A DNA stretch of 57,371 nt, filler included, from Platydemus manokwari (Eukaryota), in NCBI GenBank assembly GCA_037951405.1. It is 5 parts of 5 records of this genome, joined end to end, with 100 filler letters (N's around TTAATTAATTAA, not from the genome) between each part and the next. Parts side by side here need not be neighbours in the genome. Positions count along the whole stretch, not along the records: positions 1 to 9,876 come from JBBMOY011180767.1; 4 more parts are not named here. One strand, 5' to 3'. The notes beneath the pieces were generated by a model. That model had not been told where the DNA came from and ran no database searches. It worked only from the letters and a program-made list of their open reading frames with translations. Both the position numbers and the translations under genes were made by a program. Positions 518 through 9,876 of this stretch are shown one piece after another (the first letter of the stretch is position 1; each line of letters starts with the position of its first letter).

Positions 518-599
518 GCATATAATATATTTAAAACAAGATTAAAATGTTTTTTTATCATTAAATTCTTGAATGAATCACAAGTAAATCTCTTTTTAG

Positions 600-3500
600 G
601 ACAAATCACAATGGAATGCTGGCAGGTGTTCACACATGGGCTCAAACGATATTCACAGAGCTTTTATAATATCATGGATACATTCTCTTTAGGACTCTAT
701 CTGGCATCGTATGCTCTGCGGTGTATTGTCGATTATAAAATTAATGAAGCCAGCGATAAGCATCGAAGTGAACTGGGATTGGCAAAGAGTTATCTCACTA
801 ATTCGAGTCAAATTAACCAATATTTCGATTATCGAAACAATCTCCTAAAATCAGATGATAGCTATTGGTTGAGAGGATGTAGGTGTTGTTTTGTATTTGA
901 TTTATATATTTTTATAAAAATATCGAATAAAAAGCTGACGCATTGGTATAAAGATTTCGTTCATAACCACTAAAATATATCTTATGATTCCAAGTATTTG
1001 CAGTCTGGTTACATTTTCATAATAATAAGGCCTTTTAAATGAATTTAATAACATATCTGTGAATTATATTTTATATTTGGTAGATCCTAAAACGGTTGGA
1101 GCATCTATATTGGGTTAATAATAATAAAATGATAATAAAATTATCTAGACAACAGTGAAATGTCATACGTCCATATCCCGTACGAACTGTATAATTTTAA
1201 AATAAATTTTATAAAAATAAATTCATTTTCTACTTAATTTGCCGATGATATACCAAAAAATATAGTGTCATGATATTTGGATTAATTAAAACTCAATTAA
1301 TATCATGCTGATCGATAATCCATTCACTATAGATTACTAATACTTTATTTCATTGGATATCAGTGAAAACTTTGAATTATTATCTTCTTGAATTTTGTAA
1401 TGCCTATAAATGATGTCGCTACATTTGATTGGCTGAAATAATTGTTGAAATATATAAATATAAATATCTGATATCAATTCACGCTTAATGACACATTGAG
1501 AGATGATCGAATGATATCTATGTGAATGCTGATAATTTATATTCGGGTGTACTTTACTTATTAAAACTTGTGACAAAAATAGTTTATATTTATATATAGA
1601 TGATTTTATATTACACTTTTGATTATACTTAGCTTTCACGGTTTTTTTTAATCTAATTATTTAATTAAATATCGATTAAAAATCACTGCTTATTAATAAT
1701 CGTAAAACAAAGTGATATTTTGCTGTTGAACAATAGATTTCTGGTATCATTTACTTGGTGATATCCATATCACTTCACTGTATCATTAGTTCGATTAGCT
1801 GATGACAACCCAAACCATTTTGAATGGTGTCAAAGATTTCTTCGTCTTTAGATTTGTCATCAGAATTTAGGCATTAAGTCTACCATGTTCTATAAAACAA
1901 ATAAAGTGGCATTAACCAAATTCGGCCCCACTCACTGTTTTATATGTACGTATATAACAGTGCGTATAAGTAGCCAATTTTCTCCAAATACTCTCTTCCT
2001 GATTTGTTGATAAGTTGATAGGAATCTACAATATTTACCAAGCTCTATTGTGAGTACAAGAAAAGCTGAGCTGAGCAATGTTTACCGTTTTATTATTGAA
2101 TTAATATAGTCAAATAGTTTGCAAAACAACTTTTGATGATGCCGCCGCTATCATTGTCGATTGTAGCCACATTATTTAAATAAAAAGTAAAAATAATGAA
2201 TTGGTATCACCAATCATCGTCATTTGAATCAGTTAATAGTAATCTAATGATATTAACATTTATAATTATTTCGAGAGTGATTAGTAGGAATATAAACAAA
2301 AACTGTCCCAAAACAAATATCAGCCATTAACGATATATCGGACAATAATACATGTTTAGTGGGTTTTGAGTTCCTCCACTCAACAATGGCCCGGTTCTGA
2401 AACTGATGACAATTTAAGGAAGAAAGTGTTTGAAAAATGATAAAATCTCATTCAATCGTGTTGCTGAAAAATCTCAAATTTTCGTCCGATAAAATTCAAA
2501 TGAAATCATATTATTTCCCCCAAACGAAAATCACAGCTCTCAATGAAAGCCCATTATTCCCGTATAATCAGTTCGAAATCATTTTTATAATTATTTATTT
2601 CATAGCCAAATATAATTAAAATTCCCTGTATTCTATACGACATATCGATTTAATCTTTTACCGCTCTTTTGAAAAAAAATTCATTAATTGCTTTCAGCTG
2701 AAAAAAATCAATGGCTGAATCAGCTGCTATTCTTATAATTTGTATTGTTCCATTTTTAATTCGTATTATTATTATTCACTTTGTTCATTTACTCCAGTTG
2801 AGAAAAACAGTTGAGTGAAAAATAAATACAATTATTTTTCCAGGAATCATGAATATGAAATTTTATTTTCTTGTTTATATTTTGTCGTTGTGATCATACA
2901 GGTGAATTGTTTTACTGCACCCAATAGAAAGAAATAATATAGTTGGGTCGAGTTTTGATAATTATTAAGGGGTCAAAATATAAAAAAAAATAATAAATAA
3001 ATAAAATTTACCTTTTAGTAAATATTAGTCCTATTTCGGCCTTCCATGGGCATCATCAGTGTTTCGGAAAAGAGACAGATAGGACAAAAAGAAATTTAGA
3101 AAGCAGCTATCAATTTGTATAATTATTTAGAATCCAATTCTTCAAGTAATCCAGAACCCAAGATTACTGTATTATGGCTAAAAATTCACGCACACTTCGA
3201 CTGGATTTTAAAGCGCTGACAGGCAATAAATTTTGACGGCATTATTGACGTCAGGACAAACTCCGTCAGAATACGAAATCTGAAAGAAATAAAATTCATA
3301 ATGAGTTACAGATTGAGCTGCAATTATGATAGATGGTCACGGCTAAATGAGCTAATTAATTAAAAATAATTATTATATTATAATAAATTATAATAAATTA
3401 TAAATATTATATAAAATACATATTATCATTTATTATAAATAGTTGAAGAATATTAGATAAAATTGCATAAAAGTTTTGGTTAAATTCACTATGGAGTAGG

Positions 3501-6500
3501 TATGTTGGAAAGGTTTTATTTCACATTATGTTTTCAAATTTTAGGGTGCCAAATTCCGTACTCACCAGGCTATCCCTTTTGAAAAGATTCCGTGTTTTAA
3601 ATTTATTGTTTTATTCAAATAAACATCCTTATTTCATTTTGTTTTAAGTATGTACCCATTTAGTTATATTTAGCACATATATAACATAATCGTTTACTTT
3701 ATCTAGAATGATGTTAGCTCGATAGTGTTGGTGATTTATATAATTAGCATGTATGAAACAAAGGTTTTAAAAAGGCATGAAAAATTATAAAATGTTGACA
3801 GAAAAAGTAATATGAAAATCTATTTATTGGACCAATATTACTCGGTTCATATTGAGATTCTTAATATATCTGACTCCGTCACTAATTCAGAGCTACGTTT
3901 ATTTATACCAATCCATACCGGTAGAACATTTGATTTGTTGAGTGATACTAAATCTTGTAAAAGAAAATCGGATTTGCAACTCGGAAACCCTCGTCTAAGC
4001 ACTTAAAAAATTGCATCCCTACACAACCATACAGAGATGTAAATCAAACAATCACAGCGGAGTTGAGTGGAAAATGATAATTGAAAAAATGAACATAGCC
4101 TCAAAACAACACATACTTAAGGATTGACCAATCCCACACATATAAAAACCCACAAACCCAATAGAAACATGGAAAAGCAAATATCACATCAAAATGTGAT
4201 ACAAACATAAAGAAGGCCAACTGTCAGTTAGAAGGCACGTTTTCGTAACGTGTTGAGACAATGTATTAAATTTATGATTCGTACTGAGTGGTACGCGTGT
4301 GTTTGGAAGTGAATTTTTAATCGTTAATTTGTGATAGTTAGAAAGAAAGTTACAACTTTTGATTTTTGGAGTCAGCAATAATTTGGTTGTTGAGAATCAA
4401 GGTAACAACAAATTCAATGTATTTTGATGTGACAAAATAGTAATTAATTAATTTTATTTATTAATTCCATTGTTATCACCGCAATAAATAGATTAAACTT
4501 AAATGTTGCTATGATAATAACAATAATAGCAATCATAATGATAATAATGAAAATAATAATAACAATAATAATAATATTAATATAAACAACTTCAAATAAA
4601 ATCCGAGTTATTATCCATAAGAAATCGCGCGGCGGAATAATTGTAAAATCCACTGAAAATTTCATTTTCGAATAGATAACAGCGGAGTGGAAGGAAAAAT
4701 CGAATTAAAGCTAGATTTATTTTTGATGAAATTTTATTTTTCACATCTATTAGATATTGATATTCTTTTTGTTCATTTGAATATTTCATGGAAAATAATA
4801 TTTTTTTCATTTTAAAAATAAATTTAGCAGCCACAATAAGCGTCAGTAATTATCTCTGTTTTTAGATTTTTATTTTAGAGATCACTGAAAAGTAATTTGG
4901 CACTTATTATTATTAATAATATTAAATTCATAAGAACTCTTAGACATAATGAGAACTTTCAGAAAATTGAACCATCGATTGAATTATATACTTAAATATC
5001 AAGAATTTTCAATATTATTCAACGAAAATGATTAATTTCAATAAAACTTTCCCACAATACGTATTCCATCAAACAGAAGACCTGCCTTGTCAGTTAGATA
5101 TCTAGACTTCACTCACGAATTTAGTCGATTGATAAATATATCTCATTTAATGTTTCTGTTTTCTGTCGATCCTAATTCCCATTACCATTTGGCTGATTGA
5201 AAATATTTATTACTTTCAAGAATTAAGATTTTATTTCATTGCACATCTATTGAGAGAGTGTATTTGAAATTCATTATAAACAATAGTAGATGACAGAACC
5301 AATTTGGAAATAAAATAGCCATTCTTCATTTGTGCTATAGGATTGCAACGAAAGTTTTGCCCGATAGAAAATAATATTTATTTAACCAATAAAGACAATA
5401 TGTAAAATGGAAATATAAACAAAACATCGATCGTCTGTAAATCTAAAAAATTCAATGTTGTATGAAAAAATGTTTTGTTTAAAAGCATTATTATATCCTT
5501 TTTTAAATGTTTAATTTCTATCATATAATTAAATAATTGTTTTAGAGTGCTATCATTTAAAAACATTATTTTATGGCATATGATGGAGTTTGAGCGAAGC
5601 GACTTGAAAGAGATGACGCATTTTTTGAGGAAAGATAGAATGAATTCAACAGCAATTGAGAAGAAGATTAAATCCGTGCTTGGCACCGTTACTATTTGCG
5701 AGAACATAAACACAGAAATTTACTGCACTCAACTGCACAAACTCGTAGATGCGATTTCAGAAAAGAAGCGCGAGTTGTGTGGAAACAGTTTTAAAAAATT
5801 CCATTTCCTTTAGGACAACGCTAGACCACATACGGCACGTTTAACTCAAAATAAGCTTGCTGAGATTGTTTTTACAGTAATACCGCATCCACCATACTCC
5901 CGAGACCTTGCCCCTTCATACTATTACCTGTTTTCTCCTATGGAAAACACACTTCGTGGGAAAACGTATCACTCTGCTAAAGAGATTAACGATGATTTGG
6001 AAAAGTGGTTCGTTTCAAAAACTGCAAAATTCTATGAAAAGGGAACAAAACAACTTCCAGAACGCTGACAAAACTATTTTCAAAATTTCCAATTTACAGG
6101 CGAATGATGTTTTGTTTATATTTCTCAATTTACATATCTTTCTTTATTAGTTTAATAAATATTATTTTCTATAGGACAAAAATATCGTTCCAATCCTATA
6201 TTATAATCGTTAACATTGGAGATAGATGTCTGATTATCAGTTGAAATGTGCAAAATCAGTAATACGATAAACAATTAATCCTCATTTTCCGCGACTAGGC
6301 GTTGGTCCAACATCGTAAGGATAAAGATATTCGGTGAATTTTTTGATTGGGTGGAAGAAAGCTCATAAAAACAAATGTAAATAAAAATATTCAACCAAGT
6401 TACAAAAATATCAAAATTTATTCCTTTAAAAGTATATTTTAATGAAAATTTCTTGCTCGAAACAAATCTAAGCTAAAGGCAAATTGACATTGAAAATTAC

Positions 6501-8835
6501 TTGCTTGACAACTCCATGATTTTAGCTGTTTTTCACGCGAAAACTTTTGTCCATCGTTTTTCATAGCCGTTGGCGTGAGTTTTGTATTTGTAATGATTTC
6601 TTTTCTATTATTTCCCCGAATGATATCTTGTCCGAAATTATTGCTCAGTCATTATTCAAATTTGGATGAAAAACATAGATCGGAATTTAATTATAAACTG
6701 AAATCAATATTTGAAATTTTATCGATCGAACTCTATAAATGCAGAGAATTTCTAAAATCTGTGCTTGTTAGTTGGGAACTTTTACAATTTGAACGCAATG
6801 TATTATTTCACAGATTTAGAAATACAAATACAAACGAAAAATAACTGATCGGGAAAATCAACGAAAATGTTGAACACTATTTTCCATTATTTGAGCTCAG
6901 TCGACTATTGAAAATGTTTAATTTTCATTTGCATGCGATAATCGTACAGCGCAAATTTCCCCAATCATGCGAAATTTTATTATCGACAACTCGAGCATCA
7001 AATCGATATCTGATTTTAGAAAATCACGATTAAAACAATGAGCGAAAGTAGGAAAATTCAAATAATAATTTTGATTTATAATCATCATCAGCATTATTTA
7101 TGTTTTATTGAAAACGTTCCAGCATTGTGATCATTGTGATGAATCTTGACTGATTATCTAATTGGCATCGTAATGTAATTACTAATCAATAAGGTGGGTA
7201 TTGTTAATGCATGACAATTACAGAGGATCTCAACAGTATCGACTCAATATATTCTGTCTCTCGATCGAATCGACGCCACTCGCACTATTCATAAAGATCT
7301 TAATCATTAACTGCTTTGTATAGAGTATTTGTGTGGCTATTTATTAGAGTATTCCGTAAGTAAACTCGCATCAATTTATTTTTTTAATTGTATGCATATA
7401 TTAAAAATTCGTGATTTCGTTATTAATTATCTTATCGATGATATTACTTGCTGACAATTACTTACTCTGTGTGCGCATACGCGGAAAATCGGCGCGCAAG
7501 GTTGCAAAATGTCTACTCACTCATAAGGGAAAAGTCAGTGGATAAAATTTTTTTACTGAGAACAAAGTACTGGCTCAATGTCAAAAATTTTGTTTGAATT
7601 TTTGTTTTGAGAATGGAATTTTAATTTCTTTAATAACGAGCAGTAAAATAATTTAAAATTACATGCCCAAAGAAACTTGAACTGAAAATCTGTGAAGATT
7701 TTTGTAGCAACTTGTGCAACTTGCTTTTAAAAGCCTTAGAATATTCTGATTTGGCATGGTTGTTGTACATTGCTGGGACATTTATGACATTATTTGAAGA
7801 CTGTGAAAATGGATTTAGTTTAATGAATTCCATTAAAACCAAGCAAAGAAATAGAATGGGTGATGTTCATCTGGATATGATTGGAAGAATTAAGAGCTAT
7901 ATCCAAAGTAATAGTGTGGTTGATTTAGATTGTGTGTACAAAGCATGGGTACAGACAAAAGAAAGAAGAGAGAAGAATTAAAATGTCTGTACACAATTGA
8001 CACAAACAAAAAGTAGAATGTACAATTTATTTGCTTTAAGCAATTGTTTTATTGTAGCTTATAGTATTATCGTGCATAGTATAACAGTTTATTGTATTCC
8101 TACTAATAGTCTTGTCAAGAAATAAAGACTCTTTAAAATGAATATATTGTTTTCATGTCTTATGTTCTTTCATGTGCGCGTAATGCACACAATTAATTCC
8201 AGTTTGTCATATTTTGCAAAGCACCAAATATTGCGCACAGAGACTTGCAAAAATTAAAGGGAACATTGCTTACTGATATCGAAAACTAAGCATTAGATTA
8301 ATGAAGATAAAAACAATGTATCAAATGAAATTCCTTGTATTAATAAATGTATTGTATTGACATTATATCTAAGTAATGCTTATTTATCGAACAAATAACA
8401 ATTCTTCAATTCAAATAATCAGAAAAAGTTCTTTTACTTTACAATCCTTAATGAACTCGAGCATGGGTGTCCAATCTGTAAATCACATCTCTACAGAATC
8501 CATCATTAGCTATTAATAATATCAATGGATGAAAATAATGTGTTGAAACAAAATAATAATGGAAAAATCACCATAATCGAGATAGGGTTAATCTCGATAT
8601 ATTTCTGAATGAATTATGCTATCATTTGATCAATTCTTTAATCACTACAGGTCGCCTTTGGTGGTCTCCGTATGATCCAGAATTTGTGTCAGATTGTCTA
8701 TTCGCTGTCGCTAATGTGATGTCCTTCTCTAGAGTCACATATCTCATGCCTGCATGGGAAGTGTTAGGACCTCTTCAAATATCACTAGCTAGAATGGTAT
8801 CTGATATTATTCGGTTTATGGCGTTATTCAGTCTG
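600..8835 (+). CDS. TRPC3/6/7-like transient receptor potential channel, partial (exons 600-878 and 8651-8835; S2 to start of S5)
   Basis: Exon 1 runs tttag|GA CAA...AGA GGA T|gtaggt and exon 2 runs tacag|GT CGC...AGT CTG|gtaaaa, so the phases match (T+GT=Cys). The spliced protein ...YWLRGCRLWWSPYDPEFVSDCLFAVANVMSFSRVTYLMPAWEVLGPLQISLARMVSDIIRFM matches the TRPC S4 and S4-S5 linker motif (DP..ISE.L.A.A.V.SFSR..Y.LP....GPLQISLGR...DI.KF). The intron is 879-8650. Confidence 0.88.
3028..3085 (-). ncRNA. Type III hammerhead ribozyme motif (slightly degenerate)
   Basis: Minus strand reads GTCCTA-TC-TGTCTC-TTTTCC-GAAACA-CTGATGA-TGCC-CATGGAA-GGCC-GAAA-TAGGAC. It has an intact CUGAUGA/GAAA core, an AUC cleavage triplet, a perfect 7-bp open stem III, stem I at 5/6 bp, and stem II GCC/GGC with U in place of the usual G10.1. 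Confidence 0.7.
3960..4350 (+). repeat. Dispersed non-coding repeat, copy 1 (probable non-autonomous TE)
   Basis: Colinear with the reverse complement of 12230-12645 through shared blocks (AACCATACAG, GGATTGACCAA, ATAGAAACATG, TCAAAATGTGATA, AACTGYCAGTT, GTACTGA). Boundaries are approximate. Confidence 0.65.
5338..6198 (+). mobile_element. Internally deleted mariner-family element with ~105-bp TIRs and TA target duplication
   Basis: TA|TAGGATTGCAACG...CGTTCCAATCCTA|TA, with TIRs at 5338-5442 and 6092-6198. The transposase remnant contains FHFL*DNARPH and HPPYSRDLAPSYYYLF, and the N-terminus is fused directly to the catalytic C-half. Confidence 0.92.
7455..8268 (+). mobile_element. hAT transposon deletion derivative
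   Basis: Near-perfect 8-bp TSD (CTTGCTGA 7447-7454 and CTTACTGA 8269-8276), CAAT...ATTG termini with right end AAAGGGAACATTG, and subterminal inverted CTCTGTG(TG)CGCA. ORF 7712-7981 carries the hAT dimerization motif DCENGFSLMNSIKTKQRNRM. Confidence 0.85.
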
Positions 8836-9876
8836 GTAAAATTGCTTTTCCTTTTTTAAATAAATTACAAATATATTCGTATCAATGTATTATTGATTTA
8901 AAAATAATCTTTCGAAATACTATTATTCCCTTTAATATTTGCCTGGAATTGAGATGAAAACGTTGCCAATGATTCGATTTGAAATACTGTCAGCGATTTC
9001 TACCAAATATAACGTGGAATCTATGTGCAGTATTTAGTTTGTTCAGAATTGTTGTGCTATAATATATGTAAAACTACAAGTAATACCGATTATTCCGACA
9101 TCCCAAGCAAAAGAACAAAATTTTATTTGATAAAAATCTTTTACCGAAAAATAAAAACAAAATTAAAATAAAATAAAATAAAAATAAAGGAAAGACAAAC
9201 TAAGTTAAGGTTAATTATTTTATTTGTGATTGTATTATCGAGTTCCTCTATTTCAGTAACCTGTACTGTTTTGGGTCACAAATCCCGGTGATCAACACTG
9301 CCTGTATCATTGAATCGTGTTAAGCTTTTATATCAAATATAGCAAACATAATCTAATAACGATTGTTTTCAAAAATTTTAATGTAATGGACAAAATGTCG
9401 TTTATCGAACCGACTACTGTTTCTTTAATAATGTTTTGGTCATTTCTCCATTCGTTTTTAACATATTAAATTAAAAAAAAATGCTTAAATATTAACCATA
9501 AAACAGGCGACATTAATTCGAGGCAAAACATTAGCTGAAAAATGATCTTGGTTGTTTAATTTCTGTTTGCTCTTCCGTTGGAATCTTTGGATTCGTGTCT
9601 TCAGCTTTTTTCTGTACAATTGGCTTACTGAAAATGTTAGAGTTGTATGTTAAGTTATTTTCAATGTTGCGATCTGAAGTGAACGCATTTTACGATTCGC
9701 GGTTTTAAATATCCATTGAACAGCCCTATATACACATTTTATCAATGACAGCTTACGTGGATGTGTTTTTATTTTATCTAACAAATATTTTTAACGTTTT
9801 TTAATGTTCCAAACTACTGTATTGTGATTTTAGTTTTATATTGCCGTCATTTTGGTTTATTTATTTGTTTATTTCT

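Follow-up and report, generated by a model that had tools for sequence, protein, structure and literature searches.

We analysed a 57,371-nt window (filler included, five parts joined end to end) of the genome of the flatworm Platydemus manokwari, the first part of which, a 9.9-kb piece, carries a hammerhead ribozyme motif at 3028-3085 on the minus strand. On balance we favour reading this motif as the inactive remnant of a type III hammerhead that once worked, carried in a solo unit that resembles a long terminal repeat (LTR) and that inserted antisense into an intron of a TRPC gene with a 4-bp target duplication. By itself the window motif is no better than chance, and it was judged real because of its family context, namely an interspersed repeat family in the same genome whose majority sequence is a canonical hammerhead.

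The window motif and its repeat family

Read on the minus strand, positions 3085-3028 give a 58-base type III hammerhead motif. Stem III is formed by 3085-3079 and 3034-3028 and is a perfect 7-bp helix that includes A15.1-U16.1. It is followed by C17 at 3078, with the predicted cleavage site between 3078 and 3077. Stem I (UGUCUC at 3077-3072 with GAAACA at 3065-3060) is closed by loop 1 (UUUUCC, 3071-3066), and stem II (UGCC at 3052-3049 with GGCC at 3041-3038) by loop 2 (CAUGGAA, 3048-3042). The core is intact, with CUGAUGA (C3-A9) at 3059-3053 and G12 A13 A14 A15.1 at 3037-3034, of which GAA takes up 3037-3035. The minus-strand re-reading thus gave the same core, stem III, closed stems I and II and type III topology as the first-pass annotation of this DNA. 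The Infernal check with Rfam Hammerhead_3 (RF00008) that this annotation had proposed came out negative: the window motif scored 13 bits (E 3.1 in a 131-nt search), far under the gathering cut-off of 48.5 bits, and over the whole 9.9-kb piece nothing was found at E<=10. Likewise, the minimum-free-energy fold of the window motif contained no hammerhead (z -0.63).

The second check proposed, a search of the animal's own genome (911 Mb in about 2 million contigs) with positions 2930-3300 as query, gave a different picture. All 40 matches that were scored, from 508 candidates, had 76-83% identity to the query, and together they defined a family with a canonical consensus, a tandem pair of hammerheads and an LTR-like context. 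Homology among the family copies covers window positions 2960-3690. The window locus is one interspersed copy of this family, which supports the earlier suggestion that the motif may descend from mobile RNAs bearing a ribozyme and has aged since. What could not be seen from the window is that two hammerheads are the normal form, that the carrier has LTR-type ends with 4-bp duplications, and that the family as a whole is old and mostly decayed. The motif had also been called solitary, which holds within the window but not in the genome.

The size of the family was estimated from two patterns. With the 5' part of the unit as query 295 candidates were obtained in the genome, and a pattern for the 3' half of the ribozyme (25 specified bases) had 28 exact occurrences and 397 at up to three mismatches, against 0 for the reversed control. 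The 3'-half pattern occurred 0.41 times per locus in 29 loci that were picked via the unit 5' part, independently of the ribozyme, and there would therefore be about 960 units, or roughly 10^3. We place the family at roughly several hundred to about 1000 copies. A covariance model was built from 43 family sequences, the window copy included, so that the 82 bits of the window copy are given by construction; all of the 150 genomic candidates tested scored 67-96 bits. Exact-pattern scans of viral and metagenome collections gave 0 matches, and in the full-text literature the ribozyme sequence was found in engineered ribozymes only.

Structure and divergence of the ribozymes

The usual family copy carries two diverged hammerheads, A and, after a spacer of about 67 nt, B downstream, with predicted cleavage sites 122-132 nt (about 125) apart. 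Never more than two hammerheads were seen in a row. The duplication covers exactly the 58 nt of the ribozyme; the sequences on either side of A are unrelated to those on either side of B. The window copy is a decayed hammerhead of type A. In the family majority helix I is UGUCUC/GAGGCA with six perfect base pairs, helix II is GGCC/GGCC and opens with G10.1-C11.1, and helix III is as in the window. The conserved core (C3 U4 G5 A6 N7 G8 A9, G12 A13 A14, A15.1-U16.1 and H17) is present in the window copy as well as in the majority of A and B.

Five bases of the window ribozyme, at 3070, 3069, 3063, 3062 and 3052, depart from the family majority, which has G at each of these sites; the changes are thus losses of G throughout (three to U, two to A). 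U10.1 at 3052 is mismatched with C11.1 at 3038, and A2.4 at 3063 with C1.4 at 3074. Because the family majority is canonical, having the G10.1-C11.1 pair and a fully paired stem I of 6 bp that includes C1.4-G2.4, both mismatches represent post-insertion decay, in agreement with what had been proposed for them. The family majority and 3 of the 43 copies have an open helix III, helices I and II closed by loops and no mispair next to the core. In the window copy the mispair of U10.1 with C11.1 adjoins the core, in addition to that of C1.4 with A2.4, and mispairs adjacent to the core were a ground for discarding candidates in Perreault et al. (PMC3088659). Most likely the two mispairs abolish or strongly lower cleavage, and the window copy is probably catalytically inactive.

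In the majority sequence of A every core nucleotide and all 17 pairs are canonical. The same is true of B in both clades of the unit body, between which B differs by U.G/U-A switches only. Nine positions distinguish A from B: H17 (C or A), two in loop 1, two in loop 2, a G-C to A-U exchange at 1.2-2.2 and two U.G/U-A switches. These differences leave the core untouched and break no pair, for which the probability under random substitution is 1.2e-4 to 7.8e-4. Standard pairs fill 86.9% of the pair cells in the 43 sequences, as compared to 33-45% when the partner strand is slid. The G-C/A-U switch at 1.2-2.2 was seen in 14 sequences, and the covariation is mostly one A/B event inherited by many copies. 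For two natural copies, L023 (A) and L026 (B), the minimum-free-energy structure is the three-way junction. Natural genomic copies with a canonical ribozyme include C261449:961-1018 (minus strand), hammerhead A of C1655960 and hammerhead B of C1370360, and a natural A-B pair lies, for instance, at C1118308:290-500. The helix I of the family (6 bp with a 6-nt loop) and its helix II (4 bp) agree with the usual type III anatomy (PMC7936874). Based on the structure-sparing divergence of A and B, the canonical majority, the three-way-junction folds and the type III anatomy, there is good evidence at the sequence level that the founder copies were selected for a working hammerhead.

The carrier unit

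The window hammerhead lies in a 724-nt copy of the unit at 2963-3686 on the minus strand, of a form with a single hammerhead (S). It starts with TGTTA (3686-3682) and ends with TAATA (2967-2963), decayed from TAACA. The 4 nt upstream of it, ATTA at 3687-3690, are identical to the 4 nt past its 3' terminus, ATTA at 2959-2962. The unit tail after the hammerhead (2963-3027), which has a TTTA-rich stretch and the 3' terminal box, is the one that follows B in copies with two hammerheads. Aligned full-length copies start with TGTTATATAAGC and finish with ...GACCACTTAACA, beyond the TTTA-rich stretch, so that the unit ends are 5'-TGTTA...TAACA-3' and the terminal pattern is TGTNR...YNACA. Units in the family are 700-830 bp long, and the founder type has about 826 nt with the A/B cassette near its 3' end.

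Target duplications of 4 bp were perfect in 15 of 32 copies, and another seven matched at three of the four positions. Permuted pairings gave a mean of 1.0 and a maximum of 6 in 10,000 (p below 1e-4), and the signal was confined to one register, with 5-bp duplications in none of the 32 copies. The duplicated 4-mers are varied and have no RTATAY centre, and the targets are AT-rich. Terminal inverted repeats past the first 5 nt were no better than in shuffled sequences (p 0.70). Copies lacking the 5' end and copies lacking the 3' end both exist. TGTNR termini together with 4-bp duplications are the signature of a Gypsy-type integrase, common to Gypsy LTRs and Ginger transposons (PMC2836005). Having ends of the Gypsy pattern, 4-bp duplications and no long inverted repeats, the unit looks like an LTR, and more specifically like the solo LTR of a retrozyme-like element and not like a short interspersed element (SINE). 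A SINE-like interpretation, with variable 5' ends or truncations and a TTTA-rich tail, had been considered and was dropped in view of the terminal and duplication analysis and of the copies that lack the 3' part.

Some rearrangements were observed around the units. At L087:2840-2885 (G000:C1295595) an inverted 33-nt fragment of the unit 3' terminus stands head to head with the 5' start of another unit, perhaps through rearrangement or through nested insertion. Near several units (L025:78-146, L020:1308-1409, L060:1-109 and others) there is a separate repeat, about 100 nt long, which in L025 is inserted inside the unit. In L027 the unit is broken by a 490-nt insertion that is common to L068 and L040.

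Age and decay of the copies

The mean identity of the copies to the majority residue is 0.86, corresponding to about 14% divergence. The ribozymes (0.85-0.90) are no better kept than the unit body (0.80-0.93), and 3 of 43 ribozyme copies are fully canonical. The tree of the unit body is star-like, with a median tip length of 0.11. Judged from these values the family is old, was amplified in a past burst and decayed neutrally after insertion. The S forms are scattered over the body tree, where well-supported branches force at least five changes, and they do not cluster as compared to shuffles. S copies retain an A-type helix I, and their single hammerhead runs straight into the tail found after B in other copies. 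They therefore arose repeatedly, by deletions that joined the 3' half of A to the nearly identical 3' half of B. Excision at the RNA level by the ribozymes themselves was also considered as the origin of the S forms, and the retained A-type stem I rules it out.

Origin of the family

In plant retrozymes the LTRs carry type III hammerheads, the target duplications measure 4 bp, and solo LTRs are numerous (Cervera, Urbina and de la Pena 2016, PMC4918200). The P. manokwari family could, as we tentatively propose, be a fossil metazoan lineage of LTR-type retrozymes, inserted by a Gypsy integrase, non-coding, and having in its LTR a double type III cassette able to release a 125-nt RNA. In the reading that we favour for the family, a retroviral-type (DDE) integrase probably inserted the units as complementary DNA (cDNA). 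They may have been the LTRs of a small non-coding LTR element, of which old recombination has left only solo LTRs; alternatively, cDNAs made up of an LTR alone were inserted directly, as the plant retrozyme model allows (PMC4918200). In the founder transcripts each hammerhead would cut after C17 or A17 and leave 5'-OH and 2',3'-cyclic phosphate ends, and cuts at both A and B would free the 125-nt RNA. In an element with two LTRs, cuts in both of them would give a unit-length RNA for a host ligase to circularise, as in retrozymes. The old burst of amplification was followed by neutral decay, and S copies formed by repeated deletion between the ribozyme repeats.

The features of an LTR retrozyme that were found are the TG...CA ends with a 4-bp duplication (ATTA/ATTA in the window) and the type III hammerhead inside the unit. 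Several observations weigh against this origin, or against the hammerhead itself. At about 95 loci there was no second unit, no shared internal region, no primer-binding site (PBS) and no polypurine tract (PPT), and hence no pair of LTRs around a non-coding internal region, in a search that comprised masked all-against-all comparison of flanks, a pattern of the 3' end plus TGG, and 20 further 5' flanks. The flanks of the units were unique, and five matches had TGG after the 3' end, with nothing in common downstream. It is therefore only by its termini and its duplications that the unit is recognised as an LTR. A pair of hammerheads 125 nt apart in a single LTR is without described precedent, and the retrozyme reading offers no good reason for it. 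The 125-nt RNA between the sites, folded as a circle, had no excess stability (mean z +0.27), unlike published retrozyme RNAs. Loop 2 of the family, at 7 nt (or 5), is longer than the usual 4 nt. Finally, no family copy scanned reached the gathering score of RF00008: a canonical copy had 18.1 bits, the top family member in a genome-wide scan 26 bits, and Rfam scans of nine family loci and one canonical copy gave nothing near the threshold. RF00008 appears to be poorly matched to this lineage.

Among the alternatives we give most weight to a non-autonomous cut-and-paste DNA transposon, mobilised by a Gypsy-integrase-like transposase as in Ginger2 and carrying the hammerhead pair as cargo, and consider it unlikely. 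The 4-bp duplications, TGTNR termini and AT-rich targets fit such an element too (PMC2836005), and so do the absence of an internal region or second LTR and the presence of both 5'- and 3'-truncated copies. However, Ginger terminal inverted repeats are 40-270 bp long, whereas the unit has none past 5 nt, and the duplicated 4-mers of the family are varied and not of the RTATAY-centred kind.

It is less probable still that the hammerhead-like segments never were ribozymes, being a chance or relic feature of a repeat that was spread by transposition. This would account for Rfam scores under the cut-off and for a motif that has decayed at least as much as the unit around it, but not for the canonical state of every core nucleotide and all 17 pairs in the A majority sequence and in the B majority sequences of both clades. 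Nor does it explain why the duplicated segment is precisely the 58-nt ribozyme, or why the 9 A/B differences, a compensatory G-C to A-U exchange among them, all spare function, which has a probability of 1e-4 to 8e-4 by chance.

We regard as very improbable a SINE or non-LTR retrozyme that inserted by target-primed reverse transcription, like Schistosoma SM-alpha or the type I retrozymes of animals. At first look the 5' ends seemed variable and the tail TTTA-rich, and the element is AT-rich and in an animal host. The duplications are nevertheless fixed at 4 bp and the TG...CA ends defined, the unit end does not lie in a simple repeat, and 3'-lacking copies exist. At most two hammerheads stand in tandem and they are type III, not type I, and Rfam scans of the 9.9-kb piece and the family loci gave no tRNA, 5S, 7SL or other head. 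Derivation of the unit from a circular RNA of viroid-like or deltavirus-like type, copied into DNA, is just as improbable: such agents do have type III hammerheads, which also occur isolated in termite and fly genomes (PMC7936874), but the unit termini here are fixed and not permuted, the hammerhead is on a single polarity, helix I is short and ordinary rather than extended and pseudoknotted, and the pattern is absent from the viral and metagenome collections.

Comparison with known systems

The family resembles plant LTR retrozymes in its type III hammerheads with a 6-bp helix I and 6-nt loop, its non-coding TG...CA unit, its 4-bp duplications, its many solo units and its hundreds of copies. 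It differs from them in its animal host, in a G+C content of about 29% (over 55% in plants), in a unit of 700-830 bp (300-400 bp in plants), in having two ribozymes 125 nt apart per unit and a longer loop 2, in the lack of any copy of the form LTR-PBS-internal-PPT-LTR among the loci searched, and in being known from DNA alone. With metazoan non-LTR retrozymes and the hammerheads of Penelope-like pseudo-LTRs (pLTRs) (PMC7229834; bioRxiv 10.64898/2026.07.22.740005) it shares the animal host, the low G+C and close ribozyme pairs that could free a small RNA. The ribozymes of these elements are type I and in many cases have a weak helix III; they stand in tandem multimers of 150-450 bp, and duplications are either long or missing. 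In the P. manokwari family the ribozyme is type III, its 7-bp helix III is strong, A and B form a fixed pair, and the duplications measure 4 bp.

The isolated type III hammerheads of termite and dipteran genomes and those of RNAs like hepatitis delta virus (HDV) (PMC7936874) offer a parallel in that type III topology is found in invertebrate DNA. There the motif stands alone, its helix I is extended and a loop-loop pseudoknot is formed, unlike the ordinary anatomy and dispersed repeat found here. Ginger2 (PMC2836005) has TGTNR ends, 4-bp duplications and AT-rich DNA in common with the family. Its terminal inverted repeats of 50-180 bp are absent from the P. manokwari unit. Schistosoma SM-alpha is also a dispersed non-coding animal repeat with a hammerhead, but its ribozyme is type I and it has a tRNA-related part and a SINE-like spread, in contrast to the type III ribozyme of P. 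manokwari.

Repeat-borne hammerheads of eukaryotes are overwhelmingly type I (PMC3088659). Type III is the form of plant retrozymes and plant subviral RNAs, its occurrence in LTR-like carriers having so far been described in plants only, and animal retrozymes are type I and without LTRs (PMC7229834, PMC7761336), while type III motifs in invertebrate genomes have so far been isolated and structurally atypical (PMC7936874). An animal family of about 1000 copies with type III ribozymes, LTR-type ends and 4-bp duplications cuts across this division between plants and animals. It can serve to test whether the arrangement of ribozyme plus integrase is ancient, convergent or horizontally transferred. 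If the family is indeed a metazoan LTR retrozyme fossil, LTR retrozymes would not be confined to plants, and type III ribozymes could drive or accompany the spread of repeats in animals. Rfam-based scans miss such families, as canonical copies reach 18 bits where 48.5 are required.

Other features of the locus and the genome

The position of the motif antisense within a TRPC intron was confirmed by exon matches on both sides. The upstream TRPC-like exon (about 524-745, plus strand, approximate limits) weakly matches TRPC6 residues 398-468 (E 0.007). The downstream one (8626-8856, plus strand, open-frame limits) matches TRPC6/3, with TRPC6 residues 498-565 at E 1e-17, and the two TRPC6 segments are collinear, in the right protein order. 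Being antisense, the motif is absent from the TRPC pre-mRNA, and the window locus is probably an inert fossil with no effect on the TRPC gene. The same intron has a weak, under-cut-off match to a mariner-type transposase remnant at 5547-5810 on the plus strand (PF01359, E 0.0018). Another separate repeat, at 3959-4193, lies about 270 nt past the unit 5' end towards higher coordinates; it has 72-77% identity with L008 and L071 and is unrelated to the hammerhead unit.

The genome contains further hammerheads, among them two type III motifs close to the threshold that came out of the genome-wide RF00008 scan. At G000:C1153215:4691-4747 on the minus strand (L035:988-1052) there is an unrelated canonical type III hammerhead in AT-rich DNA, with helix I UGCAGU/ACUGCA and helix II GUCC/GGAC. 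It scores 44.6 bits with RF00008, just under the cut-off, and is single-copy in the genome and thus truly solitary. A type III-like motif with a CUGACGA core and 43.6 bits with RF00008 (G000:C1699800:796-850, minus strand; L036) is on a 1.6-kb contig much richer in G+C, and may come from a contaminant, an associated microbe or a virus. Classical type I hammerheads over the Rfam cut-off, at 34.6-47.2 bits, were detected on the short contigs G000:C380834, C127192, C756161, C1100308 and C51764 (L031-L034), so the genome also holds ordinary animal-type hammerhead repeats. L031 and L033 are 89% identical, and L031 has a self-repeat about 568 nt apart.
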